IMG/VR virus record: IMGVR_UViG_3300027541_000009
Span: 186,001-250,000 of that record
Strand: one strand, 5' to 3'
Length of the DNA stretch: 64,000 nt
Both the position numbers and the translations under genes were made by a program. This document shows positions 4,240 through 59,806 of this stretch, one piece after another (the first letter of the stretch is position 1; each line of letters opens with the position of its first letter). A model generated the notes under the pieces. It saw nothing but the letters and a program-made list of their open reading frames with translations. It did not search any database and was not told where the DNA came from.

Positions 4240-7200
4240 ATGGGTCTCTCCAGATTAGATAATTTTCTGAAATCAGTTCGTGGTACAATTATATACGTAG
4301 ATCCCAATAGTTTAGATTCTACGGATAGTGTTGAAAATCAAGGAAACTCTCTAACTCGTCCATTTAAAACGATTCAGAGAGCATTAATTGAATCTGCAAG
4401 ATTTTCGTATCAAAGAGGATTAAACAACGATAGATTCGGAAAAACTACGATTCTATTGTATCCGGGAGATCACTTAGTAGATAACAGACCCGGATATATT
4501 CCAGATGGAGAGAATAATTATAGACTGAGAAATGGACTAACTTCAAATGATTTCCCACCATTTGATTCCACAACAAGCTTTGATTTAACCGACAGAAATA
4601 ACTCTCTATACAAACTTAATAGTGTTTATGGTGGTGTTATTATCCCTCGTGGAACATCTATCGTTGGAATGGATCTTCGTAAAACAAAGATTCGTCCCCT
4701 ATATGTTCCGAACCCAACTAATGATAACATTGAGAGAACTGCTATTTTTAGAGTAACTGGTGGATGCTATTTCTGGCAGTTCACTGTTTTTGATGCAGAT
4801 CCAAATGGAATATGCTACACAGATTATACAGATAATCTATTTGTCCCTAATTTTTCTCACCATAAGTTAACAGTTTTTGAATATGCGGATGGTGTAAATG
4901 GTGTCAGAATTCAAGACGCATTTTATCCCTCTGCTTTAGAATATGATCGTACTGATCTTGACATGTATTATGAAAAGATTGGTCTTGCTTATGGAGCATC
5001 ATCTGGTCGTGCAATTGAACCAGATTATCCTTCAGCAAGTTTAGATATTGAACCAAAAATTGATGAATACAGAATTGTTGGATCAACTGGTCTATCAGTA
5101 GGAATAAGCAGTATTAAAGCTGGTAATGGAATCACCCCAACAAATAAAATTACAGTAACCACTGTAGATAATGTTCCTGGTTTAGAACCAGATACTCCAA
5201 TCAAAATTAACGGAATAGAAGTTCCTGGATATAATGGACAATATGTAATATCGGAAAAATTAAATGATACCACATTTGTCTATAGAGTTCAAAATGCACC
5301 ACAAGTAGCTTTACCATCACCAACTGGATCTACACTCGCTTTAGCATCCGATACCGTTAACTCTGCTTCTCCATACATCTTCAACTGTTCATTGCGTTCT
5401 GTATACGGAATGTGTGGACTTCTTGCAGATGGGGATAAGGCAAGTGGATTTAAATCCATGGTTGTTGCCCAATTTACTGGAATTGGACTACAGAAAGATG
5501 ATAATGCATTTGTTGTTTATAACTCTGACACGGGACTTTATGAAGACAATACAATAACTGGTAATGAAAATATAAGTTCCAATTCAAAAGCACTCTTTAA
5601 ACCAGCATATAAAAACTACCACATCAAATGTGTTAACGATGCATTCATTCAGAATGTCTCTGTTTTTGCAATTGGTTATGCAGAGCATTTTTCTGTTGAT
5701 ACTGGTGGAGACCAATCAATCACAAACTCCAACTCTAACTTTGGTGCGAAGTCATTAGTTTCAAGTGGATTCAGAAGAAATGCTTTCCCCCAAGATGATT
5801 TTGGTTATATCAGTCATATTATTCCACCAAAGGATGTTTCCCCAACAGAATATGCAATTGAATTTGACTCTATAGATGTTCAAAAAGTTGTAGGGGTTAC
5901 TACAACAAACGAAAGGTTATACTTATACGGTCAGACTGACCCAGATGTTCTTCCAGAAACCATAAAAGAAGGATATAGAGTTGGTGCAAAAGAGAACGAC
6001 TATCTAAATCTTACACTATCGGTTAATGAGACAGTAAAAGAATATCGCTCTCGTATTGTGATGCAGAATTCTCAAACGAGTTCTGAAAAGAGTTTTTATG
6101 TTGGTAGAAGCATTGTTGGAATTAATAGCATCGATACATCAAGCATCATTTCTTTTCCAACAGCTCATAATTTCGAAAATGGAGAAACAGTTCGCATTTT
6201 AAGTAGAAATGGACATTTGCCCGATGGGTTAATTCCAAATAATATTTACTATGCAATAACGAATGCAAATCCATTAAGTGGATTGACTACAAATACAACT
6301 CTTAAACTTGCAAAAAATTTAAATGATGCAATTAATGGAAATCAGATCACAATTAACTCAAATGGTGGAATTTTAAGAATAGTCAGTAGAGTTTCTGATA
6401 AGAATCCTGGAGATATTGGACACCCTGTTCAATATGATAATATTCAGCAACAATGGTATATAAAGGTAGCAACTGCATCAAGTGAAAATACAATTAATTC
6501 TATTATAAAGACTCTTGGTGTTTCTGCATTAGGAAATGCAACTCCAAGAACTTATATAACTCGTAAAAAAGATAATAGAATTTTATCGGATAGAATTTAT
6601 AGATTAAGATATGTAATTCCTGCACAAACTGGTAGATTATATGCAAGACCACCAAGTGATGGTTTTGTTATTCAAGAATCAAATGCTTCTATTGGGTCAA
6701 CCACTGGAGAAATACAAACATATTTTGGTACAGGAACTTTATCAAATATTAATCAACAAAGAAACTTCAAATTTATTGCTGATGCAAATTGGAGTGGAAA
6801 TGTTGCGAATATTTTAACAGAATTGCCACATAATTTATCAGTTGGTTCTCAAGTTGAACTTGTCAACATTAAGAGCGAATATAATCCAATTGGCGTATCC
6901 CAAACAGGATTTAATAGAGTATTTACAGTTTCTGGCATTTCAAGCTCCAGACAATTTTCGGTTGGATTAAATACAAATCCCGGCGAATATTTAAATGATA
7001 CCACAGAAAGAGATATAGATCTTCCATACTTCAAGAGAAAGAAATATACTTCAGTTTATTATATTCAACAAAACAAAGAGGTTCAAAAATACATACCAGA
7101 AAAACAAGATGGTATATATTACTTAACTATATTAAATTCCTCAAACGCACCCACAGTTACTCCATTTACAGAAGAAAAATATTCACAATCAATAAAAGAT

Positions 7201-41869: not shown

Positions 41870-42565
41870 ATGGATTTCGTTGAGTTCGTTCCTGCTTACA
41901 ACCGAATTAAAGCAAAAGGTTTCATAAAGTCTCATCGCAAAGGTGATACTGGAGTTGGTCATACTTTTGAACAAGAACTTGGTTTGACTGAGAATTGTAT
42001 CTCTGGTCCAGATATTGATGGAAAAGAGTTGAAAGCAGCAAGGAAAGGTGCTGGTGGAAAACAAACTCTCTTTACAAAGGAAGGTGAATGGCAGATACCT
42101 CAATTAAAGTTCCTAGAAACTTTTGGATTTCCTCACACAAAACACATTGGGGAATTGTCTGGACAATCTACTGTGACAAGAACCAAAAACAACAGAGGAT
42201 TTTGGATTCATACTGATGATGAATATGTTTCCATAAAGCACGAAGAACTGGAGATTGTTAGGTGGGATTGGGATTCACTTATTAAACAGTTTGCTCACAA
42301 ATTTCCATCTTGTGTTAAAGTATTTGCCGATGTTGAAGTTCGTAATGGTATAGAGTATTTTCACTACAATGAAGCGTATGTCTACATTTCTATTGATAAA
42401 AATCTGTTTCGTAAGGCAATCGAAGATGATGTAATTTCTATTGACTTACGACTGAGAACCCAGTATAATGTTGGCACTGGTAAGGGTGTTCGCAATCGTG
42501 GCACTTGCTTTCGTATAAATCACTCAAATATGGATAAATTGTTTGTAAAAGAGGTTCTTGAATGA
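41870..42565 (+). CDS. MvaI/BcnI-family restriction endonuclease
   Basis: GDTGVGHTFEQELGL.EN....PD..G.ELKA..TLFTK and C-terminal IDLR....RNRGT.FRI. Confidence 0.8.
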   Translation: MDFVEFVPAYNRIKAKGFIKSHRKGDTGVGHTFEQELGLTENCISGPDIDGKELKAARKGAGGKQTLFTKEGEWQIPQLKFLETFGFPHTKHIGELSGQSTVTRTKNNRGFWIHTDDEYVSIKHEELEIVRWDWDSLIKQFAHKFPSCVKVFADVEVRNGIEYFHYNEAYVYISIDKNLFRKAIEDDVISIDLRLRTQYNVGTGKGVRNRGTCFRINHSNMDKLFVKEVLE

Positions 42566-43425
42566 AGGATGTTATTCTTTATGGTGACTGCCGCTCAACT
42601 CTTAAACATTTTGTAGACGCTGGTGTAAAAGCACAAATGTGTGTGACCTCTCCACCATACTACGGTCTGCGTGATTACGGTAACGAAGATAATCAAATTG
42701 GTTTAGAAGAGTCGCCTGAAGAGTTTATCTCCCAACTGGTAGAGGTGTTTCGCGGTGTGCGTGATGTTCTTACAGATGATGGCACATTGTGGGTTAACAT
42801 TGGTGATTCTTATTACAACTATCGTTCTGGTAAAGGTCAGACACTACCTAAGCAATCTGTGGCATCTAACAACCAAGATTTGCCACAAATACGAAATCCT
42901 AGAAGAGGAAATAAACTTGAGGGTCTAAAGGATAAAGATTTGATTGGTATTCCTTGGATGCTAGCATTTGCTTTGCGTGCAGATGGTTGGTATCTACGAC
43001 AGGATATTATTTGGAGCAAACCAAATCCAATGCCCGAAAGTATGAAAGATCGATGTACCAAATCTCACGAATATATCTTCCTCTTATCTAAGAGCAAGAA
43101 CTATTATTTTGATGTTGATTCGATTAAAGAACCCACTGTAGATGGCAAGGAATTAAAACGGAAACGTAGTGTATGGGAAGTAACAACTAAACCATACAAA
43201 GGTTCTCACTTTGCAGTTTATCCTCCAGAACTTATTGAACCTTGTATTATTGCTGGTTCTCGTGAAGGTGACACTATTCTTGACCCATTTATGGGTAGTG
43301 GGACTACTGCTGCTGTTGCCAAATCTTTGGGAAGGAATTATGTTGGATGCGAACTTCACGAGGAGTATGGTAAATTGATTGAAAAGAGAGTTAGTGAAAC
43401 TGTTGGTCTTACCAAGTTTATGTAA
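42562..43425 (+). CDS. N4-cytosine/N6-adenine DNA methyltransferase (beta class)
   Basis: VTSPPY catalytic motif before DPFMGSGTT SAM motif; ATGA overlap with the endonuclease. Confidence 0.92.
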   Translation: MKDVILYGDCRSTLKHFVDAGVKAQMCVTSPPYYGLRDYGNEDNQIGLEESPEEFISQLVEVFRGVRDVLTDDGTLWVNIGDSYYNYRSGKGQTLPKQSVASNNQDLPQIRNPRRGNKLEGLKDKDLIGIPWMLAFALRADGWYLRQDIIWSKPNPMPESMKDRCTKSHEYIFLLSKSKNYYFDVDSIKEPTVDGKELKRKRSVWEVTTKPYKGSHFAVYPPELIEPCIIAGSREGDTILDPFMGSGTTAAVAKSLGRNYVGCELHEEYGKLIEKRVSETVGLTKFM

Positions 43426-45585: not shown

Positions 45586-46074
45586 TTATTGCAAATAGTA
45601 ACCTTTGGACTTTTTCCCTTTATAAAGGTCTCCCCTATCAATTTTATGTTCTCTACAAAACTTTCCAAGATTAAAAACTTCTACTATTTCTCCAGTTGGT
45701 GTTACTAACCGATGAACTTTTGCTAATGCCAACTCCGTGTTTTTTTGATTACTGCACCACTCAAGATTACTGACATTGTTGTTTGTTTTTACGCCATCAA
45801 TGTGATTAACTTGAGGGAGATTATTTGGATTTGGAATGTAAGTTTCTGCGACCAAACGATGAACTTTTTTTAACTTCTGTCCTTCTTCCGTTTTAATCCA
45901 AACAGTCAAGTATCCCTTGCAATGATTATTAAATCTTCTTTTTTTTGGTTCTTTATCCAATACTACTCCCCACCCATCTCTTCCACGATTGCGCCAGTAT
46001 GACCAAACTTCACCGTTTTCTGTGATAAAATAACCTTTATGTTCTGGGTGTTCTTTCATCTTTAATACCTGCAT
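45586..46074 (-). CDS. HNH homing endonuclease
   Basis: VHRLVAETYIPNPNNLPQVNHIDGVKTNNNVSNLEW; minus-strand TATAAATA at about 46085-46092. Confidence 0.9.
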   Translation of the reverse strand: MQVLKMKEHPEHKGYFITENGEVWSYWRNRGRDGWGVVLDKEPKKRRFNNHCKGYLTVWIKTEEGQKLKKVHRLVAETYIPNPNNLPQVNHIDGVKTNNNVSNLEWCSNQKNTELALAKVHRLVTPTGEIVEVFNLGKFCREHKIDRGDLYKGKKSKGYYLQ

Positions 46075-51720: not shown

Positions 51721-51957
51721 ATGTTACTCTCCAAACAGTCATTCAACAATCAACAAGTTCTCCCTTTCATAGTAAAGAAAGAGGATGAATATACTGAAGA
51801 AGGTAGTTACTCACTTCACCTATTCTCCCGAATCGTTATCACCAAGGAAGGAAAGAAATACCGATACTTACCTTTACGATTTGAAGGAGAAGAAGCACGA
51901 TTCCGCAAACGTAGTGATGCAGAGGATTATGCAAGGTACAGATTAGCACTTGATTGA
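51721..51957 (+). CDS. Hypothetical protein
   Basis: ATG 51721; followed by terminator. Confidence 0.6.
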   Translation: MLLSKQSFNNQQVLPFIVKKEDEYTEEGSYSLHLFSRIVITKEGKKYRYLPLRFEGEEARFRKRSDAEDYARYRLALD

Positions 51958-51968
51958 TGATACACAGT

Positions 51969-51993
51969 GACCCCACATCAGGGGTCTTTTTTT
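51969..51993 (+). terminator. Rho-independent terminator
   Basis: GACCCC-ACATCA-GGGGTC-T7 between convergent genes. Confidence 0.75.
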
Positions 51994-53005
51994 ATGCTTT
52001 TTCGTACCATCTATAACCATAAGCATTGCACCAAGTTTGCCCATTGTTTATACGTTGAATGTTGTTTTTGATATTAGCAACGCCACTATAATTACCATCA
52101 CCTTTGATAAAGAATGACGCCTCACTCATACTACCAAATTCTACGATTTCGTTGGTTTTAATACTTACACCATAGACAGGTTTCTTTCTTTTTTCGTTGC
52201 TAATTGCAGCAATTTTTTTATAGTGTTCTATTGAATTTGTTTTTGTTGCTGGTGTCCAATCTGTTGGTTTTGATCTAAAGAAATACCAACCTTTTACCTG
52301 TAATTTGCTATTGTCGGGACTGTTAAGTGAGTGATGAATAGCGTGATTATTTGTACGATTTCCTTGTATTTCTTCTGCCGCATCTGCCATTGATTTCCAC
52401 ATCTTTTTACGCCCTAATGTTGGATTGATTCCATATACAGCACCACGAACATTTACTCTCTTTTCTATTACTTTAGGTGTTTCACCTTTCCAAGCCCATC
52501 TATATCCAAGTGCTTGAAATGTCACACCTTTAATGCAAGCAATTATCCCAGTTTTTCCCTTTTTATTTCCACAACTATCAGCAGCAATTCCTACACTCTC
52601 ATAGTCTCTAACCCATTCACCTTCTAATGTATAACAACTCACTGCTTTGGAATGTGGATGATTTGCCCAATACTTTTTTGGTTTCTTTACACCATCACCA
52701 CCTAATGTAATGTTATATCCATTCTTACCACAAGTATCAAGTTTGTTTATCCAAAAGGTTTCACGTTCATTAACATTATCATCGCTACATTCTTCCAATA
52801 CTCTAAACTTAAAGTTATCTGCTCCGTACTTACATATGGCACGAACAATAGGCATAGAGTGAGATGAATTGTTCTCTGCTAAATTATCCTTACTTCTTGC
52901 GTTCTGTAGGTGTTGCTTCCATCTATCATATGGGTTGGGTTGTGTAGTCTTTCCCACATAGAGTTTGCTATTCTCAAGGTTGGTGATTGAGTAGATGTAT
53001 GCCAC
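51992..53005 (-). CDS. GIY-YIG homing endonuclease with NUMOD1-like repeats
   Basis: YIYSITN..N.KLYVGKT..RW.QH..KYG.DNF..LE..RE..WI..GYN; repeated F/Y.S...AA...I...GY.W modules; minus-strand TATAAATA at 53032-53039. Confidence 0.9.
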   Translation of the reverse strand: MAYIYSITNLENSKLYVGKTTQPNPYDRWKQHLQNARSKDNLAENNSSHSMPIVRAICKYGADNFKFRVLEECSDDNVNERETFWINKLDTCGKNGYNITLGGDGVKKPKKYWANHPHSKAVSCYTLEGEWVRDYESVGIAADSCGNKKGKTGIIACIKGVTFQALGYRWAWKGETPKVIEKRVNVRGAVYGINPTLGRKKMWKSMADAAEEIQGNRTNNHAIHHSLNSPDNSKLQVKGWYFFRSKPTDWTPATKTNSIEHYKKIAAISNEKRKKPVYGVSIKTNEIVEFGSMSEASFFIKGDGNYSGVANIKNNIQRINNGQTWCNAYGYRWYEKA

Positions 53006-53065
53006 TGAATTGATGAAAAATGTACTTGCGTTATTTATATTTAAGTGCTGAAATAATGATATTAG

Positions 53066-53129
53066 TTTTCCACAATGTTGTGGAAAAAGTATAATAAATG
53101 TGTGGAAAAACTGTTAGAATTGTGGAAAA
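53066..53129. promoter_or_regulatory. Cluster of four DnaA-box-like 9-mers (TTTTCCACA)
   Basis: TTTTCCACA at 53066 (+) and TGTGGAAAA at 53079, 53101, 53121. Confidence 0.7.
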
Positions 53130-53174
53130 CTTATAGTCATTTAAATGTCTCTGGGGGTCGTTATCTTACAGGTC

Positions 53175-53204
53175 ATTCTATCACACTCGCCCCCAAAATG
53201 TCAA
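53175..53204 (-). promoter_or_regulatory. sigma70-type promoter pointing toward the DnaA boxes
   Basis: Minus strand TTGACA-18 nt-TAGAAT with extended TG. Confidence 0.6.
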
Positions 53205-53277
53205 TACCCCCGCGTTCTCAAATCCCCACAATCCCCCCGCATAAATCCACCGACCCCTGATAAATACCCCCAGACCA

Positions 53278-53306
53278 TTGACAAAAACCGCCCAGCATCT
53301 TATAGT
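53278..53306 (+). promoter_or_regulatory. sigma70-type promoter
   Basis: TTGACA-17 nt-TATAGT. Confidence 0.75.
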
Positions 53307-53333
53307 AGTTTCATAACACACAGGAGCGAACTT

Positions 53334-53507
53334 ATGTCAGTTGCATATCAGCAGGCACAGAAGCAGCGTTATAGGATTACTCTGGATCTATCAGTGTTCG
53401 GTGACTTCGACCCACACCAGATTGATTGGGAGAAGTTATTCAAGTTGGAACCTGCAGAGAAGTGTGATGCTTATGTTGAGGACCTAAGTACACCTGACCG
53501 ATGGTAA
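53334..53507 (+). CDS. Hypothetical protein
   Basis: AGGAG SD; start 53334 within track ORF 53145. Confidence 0.7.
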   Translation: MSVAYQQAQKQRYRITLDLSVFGDFDPHQIDWEKLFKLEPAEKCDAYVEDLSTPDRW

Positions 53508-53588
53508 TTTGGTATCAATTTATACCATATAAGGCGTTTTTATTTTGTTAACATAAAGCATAAATAATCGGGTCTTTATGTTAACAAA

Positions 53589-53768
53589 ATGAGAACACTA
53601 AAATATAAACATTTGGGCGACATGAGGATTATACGAGTCGCCCAAATAACCACTGATATTCTACCTCAACTGCAAGAGGTTATGCAACAGTTAGAGGAGA
53701 ACGGTGAGGATAGTCGTGAGGTGATATTGCGCGTCTTAAGTGATATCGAAGACCGTCTGGGTAACTGA
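53589..53768 (+). CDS. Hypothetical protein (59 aa)
   Basis: Read manually; start lies in a 17-bp hairpin arm; stop abuts repeat copy 14. Confidence 0.55.
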   Translation: MRTLKYKHLGDMRIIRVAQITTDILPQLQEVMQQLEENGEDSREVILRVLSDIEDRLGN

Positions 53769-53822
53769 AACTTGGATCCTCTAAAGTGTACCTATAGTGT
53801 AAGGACAACCACAAACCACTAA

Positions 53823-54026
53823 GTGACTCAAATCGAACTGAACACCGCTATCGAGAATGCCTTCCAACTTTGTGCCGCTCAGAGTTGGGAACTGTTCGAC
53901 GCCTGGTATGAGCGTCTGCACAATGTTCAGGTGATTGATAACATTGAGCACATCACAGAAATCGAAGCAGAGCATAACGAAACGAACCTCAATCTGATGC
54001 TCGCTGGTGTTATGCCTTCTGCCTGA
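53823..54026 (+). CDS. Hypothetical protein
   Basis: GTG start after repeat copy 14. Confidence 0.6.
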   Translation: MTQIELNTAIENAFQLCAAQSWELFDAWYERLHNVQVIDNIEHITEIEAEHNETNLNLMLAGVMPSA

Positions 54027-54060
54027 TTTCGTCTCTTAATTAACACTCACAACACACACA

Positions 54061-54318
54061 ATGACTGTTACTTTCCAAGCAAATCTGACCGATACTGAGT
54101 ATAACGGTTGGACGAATTATGAGACCTGGAATGTTGCTCTCTGGATTCAAAATGATGAGGGTTTCTATAGTCTTGCCCGTGAGGTAGGTAACTATGAAGA
54201 CTTCGTAGATGCTCTGGAAGCGTGTTCTTTCAATTCCCTAAAAACGCCTGACGGAGTATCATTCAAAGACCCCAAGATTAACATCCTTGAGATTAACTCT
54301 GACGTGTTCGATTTCTGA
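54061..54318 (+). CDS. Hypothetical protein (YNGWTNYETWNVALWI.ND family)
   Basis: Widespread phage family motif. Confidence 0.8.
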   Translation: MTVTFQANLTDTEYNGWTNYETWNVALWIQNDEGFYSLAREVGNYEDFVDALEACSFNSLKTPDGVSFKDPKINILEINSDVFDF

Positions 54319-54404
54319 CCTTAAGTAACAACAAGGGGGGAATAAGATGCGCCCTATAAAGACACTTACTCAACACACACTGATTTACACTTTTCTTCTT
54401 CATT

Positions 54405-54575
54405 ATGTCCAAGCAAGTTCTTCTTTCTCTGCTGGCACAAGGTAACAACGGCAGCGAAATTCTGTCCATTCTGGATGCAATCGTTGCTGATAATGTTGCT
54501 GGTTTCGATTATATCGAGTCGCCGCAACTTGAGTCGGCACTGGGTATTCCTACTCTGGAAGAGATTGCCTTCTGA
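54405..54575 (+). CDS. Hypothetical protein (56 aa)
   Basis: Read manually; host-like codon use. Confidence 0.6.
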   Translation: MSKQVLLSLLAQGNNGSEILSILDAIVADNVAGFDYIESPQLESALGIPTLEEIAF

Positions 54576-54624
54576 TTGTTAGTAACTGTATGCCCCTTGG
54601 TTGTTAGACAGAGCGTGAGCGATG

Positions 54625-54653
54625 TTGACACTGAGGGGCGTTTATGTTATGAT
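54625..54653 (+). promoter_or_regulatory. Strong sigma70-type promoter with no immediate ORF
   Basis: TTGACA-17 nt-TATGAT with extended TG. Confidence 0.7.
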
Positions 54654-55130
54654 TGGCAGTGATGCTTATCGGCAGTTAATTGCCGCCGATTTGTTATAGC
54701 GCCGCGCGGCGTTGTTATAAGCCCGCCGATGCCCCCCCCCCTTATTAAAAAAAGCAAACTACCCTAACCTACAGAGGTGACAAATCGACCGATAAATATC
54801 AATCTCATAAAAATTTTCCGGAGGTATTTCTAAGTGTTTGGATGGATTCACAAGAACGGTAAGAGTCGCCCCAATAAAAATAAATCAAAAGGTGCAGCAA
54901 GAACTTGTGCTCAAAAGAATGCTGCGAGAAAGCGAAAGAAGAAAAAATGAGAAGGAGAACACCATATTGGAATTTTTGGAGAGTGATACTCGCAGGTTGG
55001 ATAATCAGATATCCAAAAACAATGGGTAGAATTGTATTAATCCCCCTGGGGGTTTTTGTTGTATTGATATATAATGCGTTAGTAAAATAAGTTTTTACTA
55101 AAAAATTTTCCGGAAAAAGTTTAATAAAAA

Positions 55131-57472: not shown

Positions 57473-57874
57473 ATGCCTTTAGAAAGGGTAAGTAAAGGAT
57501 TTAAAGACATTAGTATGTCATTTCAGAGCAATCCTCTGACTAATGACTTGATTGCTATTAACAATGCAAATGCGATTGCTCGTTCCATTCGAAATATTGT
57601 CTTTACTTACCCTGGTGAAAAATTTTTTAATGAAGGTTTTGGTTCCAAAATTAATCGCTCTCTCTTTGAAAACCTAGATCAACTGACAGCTGAAAACATT
57701 AAGGATGAAATAGAGTATTCTATTTCAAACTATGAACCAAGAGTTTCTTTAAATCAAGTGGTCGTAATTCCAGATTATGATAACAATTCATTTGACGTAT
57801 TAATTTCTTATAGAATTGTCGGTATTGATGTTACACCTCAACAGTTACAGTTTGTTTTGCAACCTATTAGGTAA
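57473..57874 (+). CDS. gp25: Baseplate wedge subunit gp25
   Basis: FKDIS.SF..NP..NDL, AI.RSIRNIV.T.PGEK.F...FGS, YEPRV; late promoter ATAAATA at 57447. Confidence 0.92.
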   Translation: MPLERVSKGFKDISMSFQSNPLTNDLIAINNANAIARSIRNIVFTYPGEKFFNEGFGSKINRSLFENLDQLTAENIKDEIEYSISNYEPRVSLNQVVVIPDYDNNSFDVLISYRIVGIDVTPQQLQFVLQPIR

Positions 57875-59806
57875 ATGCCATTAACAAATTTTTCAAATCT
57901 GGATTTTAACCAGATAAAAGCTTCTTTAAGAGACTATTTAAAAGCAAACTCAAATTTCACCGACTATGATTTTGAGGGATCTAATTTATCGTCTATACTT
58001 GATGTTTTAGCATATAACACATATATTACCTCATATAACGCAAACATGGTTGCGAATGAGGTTTTTATTGATAGTGCTACTCTTAGAGAGAATGTTGTTG
58101 CCCTCGCTAGGAATATTGGATATGTTCCTAGGTCAAGAAAAGCAGCAAGAGCTACGGTAAGCTTTTTTATTGATACCTCAAATATCACTCCTGTTCCAGC
58201 ATCAATAACTCTAAAAAAAGGAATTGTAGCAACATCATCAAGTTCTTTTGGAAATCAATCATTTGTTTTTTCAATATTAGATGATGTGACTGTACCAGTA
58301 ATTAATAAAGTAGCAACATTTAATGATTTAAAAATATATGAGGGTGTACTGCTAACAACATCTTTTACTTATTCTTCGAGAAATCCAAATCAAAGATTTA
58401 TATTACCCAATCCTGGCGTAGATACTTCTTTAATCTCAGTATCAGTAAAAGATGACCAGAATTCAACCTCTTTGGTCAATTATTCTTTACAAAATAGTGT
58501 CTTTGATGTAGATAAGGATTCTACTGTCTATTATATCCAAGAAATTGAAGACGAAAGATATGAATTGCTTTTTGGTGATGGTATTTTATATGGCAAAAAA
58601 CTTGAGAATGATAATTTTATAGAAGTTAATTATATTGTATCAAATGGTGATAGTGGAAATGGAGTAAATCAATTTGCTTTTTCCGGAAGATTAACATATA
58701 CCAGAAATTCTGTAGAGTATACAGTAAACTCAGGAATTTCTTTGTTGGCAACTGGGTTAATTTCTTCTGGTGGAGAAAACATAGAAACTGTAGAATCTAT
58801 TAAAAAATATTCAACAAGAATATATGCTTCCCAGAATAGAGCGTTGACTGCTAGTGATTATGAATCATTAATACCTTCAAAGATTTATCCAGAAACGGAA
58901 TCAATATCAGTTTTTGGTGGAGAAGAGTTGATTCCTCCCCAATATGGAAAAGTTTTCATAAGTATTAAACCAAGGACTGGAGATTTTATTCCCAATTTAA
59001 TAAAAGAAAATATTAAAAGAGATTTAAAGAAATACGCAGTGGCAGGAATTGTTCCTGAAATTTTAGATCTTAAGTATCTCTATATTGAGGTAGATTCTAA
59101 AATTTATTATAATACAAATTCCGCACAAGGATCTGATTATGTTTCGAGTATTGTTCAGTCAAATACCAATAAATATGCAGAATCAACCGAATTGAATAAG
59201 TATGGAGCAAGATTTAAATACAGTAAATTTCTTAAGATAATAGATGATAGTCATCCAGCAATAACATCAAACATCACTAAGATTCAAATGAGAAGGGATT
59301 TAAGAGTAGTCTTAAATTCTATAGCAGAATATCAGATTGGATTCGGCAATGCATTCCATATTAAGAGTATGAATGGATACAATGTGAAATCTACAGCATT
59401 TACTATTTCCGGAATACAAGGTTCTGTTTACTTATCGGACATCCCAGATACTAATGGAAATACTGGAAGCATGTTCCTTTTTACTGTACCAAGTGTTAAT
59501 TCCAATGATGCAACTATAGTAAGAAGAAATGTTGGTAGAATTGATTATGTCAAAGGAATAATTACACTCAATCCAATAAATGTTTTATCTACCGATAAAG
59601 TAAAAGATGGACAATCAATCATTGAAATTTCAACTATTCCAAAATCAAATGATGTTATCGGATTACAGGATTTATATTTGCAGCTAGATATTAATAACAG
59701 TATATTTGAAATGATTACTGATCAAATATCATCAGGACTTGATCCATCTGCATCAAATTACATAGTAACTTCAAGCTACAGTAACGGGAATTTAGTAAGA
59801 CAATAA
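57875..59806 (+). CDS. gp6: Baseplate wedge subunit gp6
   Basis: LDF.QIK..L, FTDYDFEGS.LS...DVLAYNTY, FGDG..GKK, QNRA.TA.DY, P.YGKVFISIKP. Confidence 0.95.
   Translation: MPLTNFSNLDFNQIKASLRDYLKANSNFTDYDFEGSNLSSILDVLAYNTYITSYNANMVANEVFIDSATLRENVVALARNIGYVPRSRKAARATVSFFIDTSNITPVPASITLKKGIVATSSSSFGNQSFVFSILDDVTVPVINKVATFNDLKIYEGVLLTTSFTYSSRNPNQRFILPNPGVDTSLISVSVKDDQNSTSLVNYSLQNSVFDVDKDSTVYYIQEIEDERYELLFGDGILYGKKLENDNFIEVNYIVSNGDSGNGVNQFAFSGRLTYTRNSVEYTVNSGISLLATGLISSGGENIETVESIKKYSTRIYASQNRALTASDYESLIPSKIYPETESISVFGGEELIPPQYGKVFISIKPRTGDFIPNLIKENIKRDLKKYAVAGIVPEILDLKYLYIEVDSKIYYNTNSAQGSDYVSSIVQSNTNKYAESTELNKYGARFKYSKFLKIIDDSHPAITSNITKIQMRRDLRVVLNSIAEYQIGFGNAFHIKSMNGYNVKSTAFTISGIQGSVYLSDIPDTNGNTGSMFLFTVPSVNSNDATIVRRNVGRIDYVKGIITLNPINVLSTDKVKDGQSIIEISTIPKSNDVIGLQDLYLQLDINNSIFEMITDQISSGLDPSASNYIVTSSYSNGNLVRQ

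Follow-up and report, generated by a model that had tools for sequence, protein, structure and literature searches.

Clusters of binding sites for the replication initiator DnaA have been described on phages and plasmids as well as in bacterial origins. In phage lambda, DnaA boxes downstream of pO are footprinted by DnaA, and DnaA stimulates pR-dependent activation of the origin (PMC3985674 and papers cited therein). The cyanobacterial form of the box, TTTTCCACA, is described as species-specific for cyanobacteria, and oligonucleotides carrying it were used in DnaA-binding assays (PMC4674748). E. coli datA and the DnaA-box clusters of B. subtilis are groups of high-affinity boxes outside the chromosomal origin that titrate DnaA, and iteron plasmids and P1 oriR combine DnaA boxes with an AT-rich region and iterons. 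By contrast, T4-type replisomes are not known to need DnaA, and the T4 R-loop origins oriF (uvsY) and oriG (gene 34) consist of a promoter with a downstream AT-rich unwinding region. Cyanophage promoters are able to use host transcription factors to sense host physiology, as with PhoB boxes at pstS and NtcA sites. We describe here a T4-like virus of cyanobacteria with four perfect copies of the DnaA box of its host within 64 bp of a conserved control region, a feature shared by many related viruses, which suggests that the virus reads or exploits the replication state of the host.

We analysed a 64,000-nt stretch of IMG/VR record IMGVR_UViG_3300027541_000009 (positions 186,001 to 250,000; hereafter the window), for which an earlier note had reported four cyanobacterial-type DnaA boxes, the first two inverted and the last three 22 and 20 bp apart, next to an AT-rich stretch in non-coding DNA of a T4-like phage. 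This observation is correct. Boxes 1 and 2 form a near-perfect palindrome with 10-nt arms and a 2-nt centre, and boxes 2–4 are direct repeats with start-to-start spacings of 22 and 20 bp that were also recovered as one repeat family (Table 1). Only one further exact copy was found in the window, against 1.73 copies expected in shuffled sequence, and four sites within 64 bp has a Bonferroni-corrected Poisson probability of about 2e-8. The relaxed consensus TTWTNCACA was not enriched across the window (10 found, 13 expected), indicating that the signal is the cyanobacterial form and its clustering. Positions 53030–53065 are 80.6% A+T, and the 56-bp stretch 53010–53065 is at the 97.5th percentile of the window, which is unusual but not extreme. 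An ORF that overlaps the boxes (53075–53260) is not conserved, since relatives with an identical neighbouring gene have different sequence there; the stretch is non-coding.

The T4-like assignment was likewise correct. Pfam and PHROG scans identified genes for gp6 and gp25 baseplate proteins, a helicase, an MvaI/BcnI-type nuclease with a methyltransferase, and HNH and GIY-YIG endonucleases. The gp6 protein is 73.5% identical to that of Synechococcus phage S-SM2 and 72.3% identical to that of Bellamy. Megablast of the region against 50,697 phage records found nothing, and relatives were reached only by distant blastn, in which similarity was detectable only with cyanomyoviruses, and by protein search. 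Four IMG/VR contigs carry the identical region, as do 14 runs typed as DNA and six RNA-labelled runs of river metagenomes; the window is therefore a T4-like cyanomyovirus from a river or estuary. The runs were examined as assembled contigs. Over positions 51900–54900, three of the RNA-labelled runs gave a nearly identical set of contig pieces, with similar relative depth, to a DNA run of the same series, consistent with phage DNA carried into the RNA libraries or with even transcription, so these runs say nothing about transcripts. Elsewhere in the window, a repeated 34-nt promoter-like element has a spacer as conserved as its hexamers; it looks like a repeated early-promoter cassette of the hyperplastic region, and also produced high word depth and a backward-pointing joint in the read layout. 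The T4-type late promoter core ATAAATA occurs 14 times on the plus strand and three times on the minus strand, typically 26–39 nt upstream of ORF starts, including those of long ORFs at 4240, 10799 and 15050 and of the putative gp25 gene at 57473.

Table 1. Positions of the features discussed in the text, numbered from the first nucleotide of the window.
Position	Strand	Feature	Remarks
53066..53074	+	DnaA box 1 (TTTTCCACA)	Left arm of the inverted pair; overlaps the -35 of a candidate rightward promoter
53079..53087	-	DnaA box 2	Right arm of the 22-bp palindrome 53066-53087
53101..53109	-	DnaA box 3	22 bp from box 2
53121..53129	-	DnaA box 4	20 bp from box 3; about +39 to +47 of the leftward transcript
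23907	-	Further exact copy of the box
53006..53065	.	AT-rich remnant of the conserved AT-rich array found in relatives	Left part of the array replaced by the endonuclease gene
53142..53209	-	Conserved single-copy 68-nt block with a leftward sigma70 promoter and a conserved initial transcribed segment	-35 TTGACA at 53204-53199, 18-nt spacer, TG-extended -10 TAGAAT at 53180-53175; inferred start near 53167
53067..53095	+	Candidate rightward promoter covered by boxes 1-2	TTTCCA, 17 nt, TATAAT; inferred start near 53102 falls in box 3; weakly supported
53210..53277	+	Conserved C-rich block	Contains AAATCCCCACA (53220-53230) and a late-promoter-type GATAAATA (53259-53266)
53278..53306	+	Rightward sigma70 early promoter of the small-gene cluster	TTGACA, 17 nt, TATAGT
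53334..53507	+	Small conserved early gene (57 aa, phrog_12516)	Anchor used to collect relatives
51992..53005	-	GIY-YIG homing endonuclease gene	Downstream of the leftward promoter, with the box array inside its inferred 162-nt leader; junctions at about 51990 and 53010
53140-53165 and 53036-53056		One copy, plus a degenerate one, of a repeat of about 37 bp	Flank the box array
53771-53804	+	34-nt promoter-like element (TTGGAT-type -35, TATAGT/TATAAT -10)	Nine more copies between 35652 and 50920, all on the + strand; ten in total with at most 3 mismatches
4202, 10766, 15022, 19137, 24712, 38244, 53260, 53560, 57447		ATAAATA late promoter core	Conserved copy 12 nt upstream of the early -35 in the hub
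41870-43425 (+) and 45586-46074 (-)		MvaI/BcnI-family restriction endonuclease gene directly followed by an N4/N6 DNA methyltransferase gene; free-standing HNH endonuclease gene on the opposite strand	Type II R-M-like pair in a lytic phage
57875-59806		gp6 baseplate wedge gene

We next examined the context of the boxes, which the earlier note had not described: neither the promoters, nor the hub, nor the adjacent homing endonuclease had been seen. The boxes lie in the 328-bp spacer between the endonuclease gene and the small early gene, in which a promoter scan identified two near-perfect, back-to-back sigma70 promoters. A profile (nhmmer) model grown from 53140–53212 matched once in the window, once in the complete S-SM2 genome and in 120 related loci. 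The conservation profile of these loci is that of a true sigma70 promoter: the -35 hexamer, the TG and the first, second and sixth bases of the -10 are nearly invariant, the spacer is free, and a strongly conserved initial transcribed segment follows. An Rfam scan of 52500–54000 gave only chance-level hits, indicating that no known RNA family explains the conserved block. The start sites are inferred from promoter geometry; with the leftward start so placed, the four boxes lie at about +39 to +102 of a transcript that in this phage continues into the endonuclease gene. Thus, the boxes closely flank promoter elements or lie in the leader, as in a DnaA-regulated promoter, although the response of transcription to DnaA level was not measured. 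Boxes 1–3 also cover a rightward promoter match (10 of 12 positions), but a -10-like hexamer between boxes was not significantly enriched in relatives (0.38 against 0.28 in shuffles), and this promoter is only a weak candidate. Between the two divergent promoters (53190–53277) the conserved C-rich sequence forms six runs of four or more G on the minus strand, giving it G-quadruplex potential, and in relatives contains a nearly invariant 12-mer, AAAATCCCCACA, whose last bases resemble a DnaA-box core.

To determine whether the boxes are conserved, we compared the hub with those of related phages. At the syntenic place, and without any endonuclease gene, S-SM2 has one 1-mismatch box, TTCTCCACA, followed by two exact boxes 21 bp apart. 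The 190,789-bp S-SM2 genome contains only three exact boxes, two of them in the hub, and this is its only cluster of three or more near-matches. Among other cultured phages, S-SCSM1 has two boxes, and 48 ACG-2014d isolates share a four-box array with 11-bp periodicity. By contrast, Bellamy, SynMITS9220M01 and S-SRM01 have the hub without DnaA boxes, and S-B05 and P-TIM68 lack the hub; blastn of more distant hub types against isolate genomes found nothing useful. Using the small early gene as an anchor, we found 474 viral contigs that encode a relative, and analysed 80 of these. In this sample, which was chosen without regard to boxes, 45 of 47 exact boxes lie within 200 bp to the left of the promoter block. 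Across 108 distinct hubs, 42 of which were ascertained through box pairs, there are 230 exact boxes within 700 bp of the block and three in 520 kb of flanking DNA. Positional enrichment in related hubs is about 200- to 290-fold. In more distant hubs, however, large arrays also lie upstream of the leftward promoter, so one geometry does not fit all cases. Four homologous four-box arrays keep their boxes (96% identity) and spacing while the spacers have diverged to 53% identity; the value for the boxes is inflated by our selection rule of at most one mismatch. Hence, the two sequence outcomes that the earlier note had said would count against it, namely no conservation in relatives and a motif equally frequent elsewhere, were both looked for and neither was observed.

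An unbiased scan of viral contigs for two boxes 20–23 bp apart returned at least 116 loci, of which 67 link to this phage group by tblastx of the flanks and 44 carry the same promoter block, with up to eight boxes in some of these hubs. About 49 of the 116 contigs with phased TGTGGAAAA pairs do not belong to the cyanomyovirus group (L084, L088, L105, L128, L144 and others, in our numbering of loci); some have 6–7 boxes and 55–65% G+C, and they could be other phages, plasmid-like elements or bacterial origin fragments filed as viral. Adjacent exact boxes in the 108 hubs are spaced 11–12 or 20–22 bp when direct and 13 or 23 bp when inverted, which are whole helical turns. A partial scan of genome contigs with the same search pattern gave a taxonomically mixed sample that we used for box grammar only, not for frequencies; 21 cyanobacterial genome loci from this sample show the same extra spacings (11, 12 and 13 bp) and share a preference for C on both sides of the box. 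The commonest single-base variants in the hubs are at positions 1, 3 and 6, and six of the seven position-3 variants give TTATCCACA, the canonical DnaA box. None of this proves binding, but it is what DnaA sites look like.

We also compared the content of the 300 bp to the left of the promoter block (the slot) in 45 distinct close relatives. Of these slots, 17 hold DnaA boxes, nine hold the core ATTCTCAATAA, often as an inverted pair, 14 hold a 7-1-7-like sequence with a GAATTC-centred palindrome, and five hold none of these. The types never co-occur, and the two alternative motifs are absent from 190 kb of flanks, where the DnaA box occurs twice. The alternative operators were seen in relatives among L008–L082, in SynMITS9220M01 (L319:1200–1290) and in S-SRM01 (L323:1010–1070). 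The core ATTCTCAATAA matches the Anabaena FurA consensus, AAATAAATTCTCAATAAAT, and the site in the promoter of FurA itself (PMC4005646). The third type resembles Fur-family 7-1-7 boxes. Phages whose small gene is 98–100% identical carry different cassettes, indicating that swapping is recent. No gene family within 3 kb co-varies with cassette type.

In most relatives the leftward promoter has no ORF downstream and points at a conserved AT-rich tandem array to the left of the slot. In the window, the endonuclease gene replaced about 45 bp of this array. Relatives L015, L059, L073 and L080 carry different minus-strand genes at the same point, suggesting a homing hot spot that could drive cassette exchange. 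Between the cassette and the leftward promoter, relatives (e.g. L053:2230–2380 and L065) have one to five tandem repeats of about 37 bp with the core TATAAATGTGCTGAGGTCTTGTG. The unit resembles the sequence just upstream of the rightward promoter, and could be an iteron or a promoter-derived duplication.

The functional interpretation in the earlier note, which offered a host-DnaA-assisted origin, a datA-like sink or a DnaA-controlled promoter that senses host state, is supported in part: that these are selected DnaA-type boxes is strongly supported, but which of the three functions applies is not settled. We consider it very probable that host DnaA binds these sites, although binding was not assayed. 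For function, our preferred reading, to which we assign a probability of about 0.45, is that the array is an exchangeable host-regulator input on the leftward early transcription unit of a single-copy hub that many cyanomyoviruses share. This reading is supported by the fixed placement relative to a conserved promoter and by the mutually exclusive alternative operators that match host regulators, and lambda provides a phage precedent. The sequence comparisons themselves establish the identity of the 9-mers to the cyanobacterial DnaA box, their clustering, conservation and oriC-like spacing, their placement 0–200 bp downstream of a conserved leftward sigma70 early promoter, and the presence of Fur-family-type operators in the same slot in sister phages. 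What we infer from these is that DnaA, probably as an ATP-dependent oligomer on one face of the helix, occupies the leader of the leftward transcript and would gate it by roadblock, by promoter-proximal looping, or by occluding the weak convergent promoter that the boxes cover. In this view, the output of the hub would depend on the replication and energy state of the host, and titration of host DnaA by replicating phage DNA would be an unavoidable side effect. This reading is tentative: sites at +39 to +102 are not at a classical repressor position, no expression data exist, and the leftward transcript has no known function in relatives that lack the endonuclease.

An attractive but unlikely alternative is that the hub is a replication origin, in which a strong early promoter fires leftward across DnaA boxes into an AT-rich unwinding array, with host DnaA helping to open the DNA or stabilise an R-loop, as a hybrid of T4 oriF/oriG logic and oriC logic. 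The hub is a single-copy, unusually long non-coding region with an oriC-like box grammar, an AT-rich array and iteron-like repeats in relatives; S-SM2 encodes gp59, gp32 and gp41, which could load on opened DNA, and in lambda DnaA already acts through transcription near the origin. However, initiator sites would be expected to be conserved among close relatives, whereas 28 of 45 (62%) have no DnaA box in the slot, and 23 of those 28 hold unrelated operators there. The AT-rich array is truncated in this phage, to about 60 bp, yet the phage is abundant in many river samples; given this remnant, whether an oriC-type unwinding element is present was left undecided. The same holds for DnaA-trios, for which we saw no trinucleotide periodicity by eye next to the boxes but ran no formal test, and for a T4-type R-loop origin, since the conserved leftward promoter points at the array in relatives but here also serves the endonuclease gene; neither replication starts nor RNA-DNA hybrids were mapped. 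GC-skew analysis, which had been suggested beforehand, showed no strand-compositional switch and was uninformative in both genomes examined: cumulative skew is monotonic in S-SM2 and shows only a shallow local dip in the window, although skew is a weak test in T4-like phages. Cassette swapping favours an interchangeable regulatory input over an indispensable origin core or a pure sink, but does not exclude an origin role, and the two readings merge if the hub is an R-loop-type origin whose promoter is gated by whichever host regulator the cassette recruits.

It is also unlikely that the array is purely a decoy that soaks up host DnaA as phage DNA multiplies and shuts down host initiation, with the Fur-type cassettes likewise titrating Fur. 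The sites are perfect-consensus and therefore presumably of high affinity, with two to eight per genome, swapping is compatible with alternative decoys, and titration by multicopy boxes is established for datA, B. subtilis clusters and Fur titration assays. A sink could sit anywhere, however, yet the boxes are confined to a 200-bp slot with fixed orientation relative to a promoter, and only four are present here; this argues against position independence but does not decide the matter, since no IHF site was sought and DnaA-ATP hydrolysis was not measured. Binding by a phage-encoded protein or another host factor, with the DnaA-box identity being convergent or mimicking the box to compete with DnaA, is doubtful but not excluded, including for a binder encoded elsewhere in the phage genome. 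Mutually exclusive operator cassettes do resemble the immunity-type modules of other phages, but no gene within 3 kb tracks cassette type, two cassette types match consensus sites of host regulators (DnaA and FurA), and spacing and flanking-base preferences match cyanobacterial chromosomal clusters. We rejected the possibility that the boxes arose by chance or are functionless cargo of the abutting endonuclease cassette, given their clustering probability, their conservation against diverging spacers, and the arrays at the same site in S-SM2, L011, L016 and many other relatives without the endonuclease. We also set aside an RNA-level function, such as a hairpin formed by boxes 1 and 2 or UUUUCCACA repeats in the leftward RNA, because distant hubs carry arrays upstream of the promoter, the spacing follows the DNA helical repeat, and the alternative cassettes match protein-binding DNA consensus sites.

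Cyanomyoviruses kill a large share of marine and freshwater picocyanobacteria, and their replication depends strongly on host physiology and light, but how they sense the host and where they start replication is not known. Perfect, phased host DnaA boxes at one conserved site in dozens of lineages, three of them cultured phages (S-SM2, S-SCSM1 and ACG-2014d), give a concrete and testable handle on these questions. If confirmed, the presence of Fur-family-type operators in the same slot in sister phages would mean that phages swap host-sensor modules, a regulatory principle not previously described, and the boxes would be the first link between DnaA and a T4-type phage. A more speculative and unlikely possibility is that the hub, with a plug-in slot for host global regulators (DnaA boxes, Fur-type boxes or a third operator) exchanged between co-infecting phages, possibly with the help of homing endonucleases that target the site, is also the long-sought replication origin of these phages, with a host-RNA-polymerase promoter firing into an AT-rich array gated by DnaA. 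Phage replication would then be tied to the light- and energy-dependent replication licensing of the host.

We found no paper describing such an array: full-text searches for cyanophages together with DnaA boxes, DnaA or origins of replication returned only incidental co-mentions, and papers containing the 9-mer together with DnaA concern bacterial origins. As far as these searches show, DnaA and Fur-family sites have not been described in cyanophages, in which they would be borrowed host-regulator inputs like the PhoB and NtcA sites, but as alternative cassettes in one slot. Cyanobacterial oriC clusters have the same 9-mer, 11- and 21-bp phasing, occasional 13-bp inverted pair and flanking-C preference as the phage arrays, but the phage locus has no dnaN or dnaA neighbourhood, and its boxes are dispensable among close relatives. 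Like datA and the B. subtilis clusters, the array is a cluster of presumably high-affinity boxes outside a chromosomal origin, but position and orientation are strictly fixed next to promoters. Like iteron plasmids and P1 oriR, the hubs of relatives combine DnaA boxes, an AT-rich array and tandem repeats, but no Rep-type initiator gene is adjacent, and the 37-bp repeats resemble the region upstream of the promoter rather than classic 19–22-bp iterons. Like oriF and oriG in T4, the hub has a promoter that in relatives points at an AT-rich array, and, as judged in S-SM2, it lies a few kb upstream of gene 25, as oriF does in T4, but T4 uses MotA-dependent middle promoters and no host initiator sites, whereas here the promoter is sigma70-type and carries DnaA boxes. 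As in lambda, host DnaA boxes lie downstream of a phage promoter and would link transcription near a replication control region to host DnaA; the lambda sites, however, are weak and few and serve a phage that uses the host replisome, whereas those described here are perfect-consensus and phased, are exchangeable for Fur-type operators, and sit in a T4-like phage with its own replisome.
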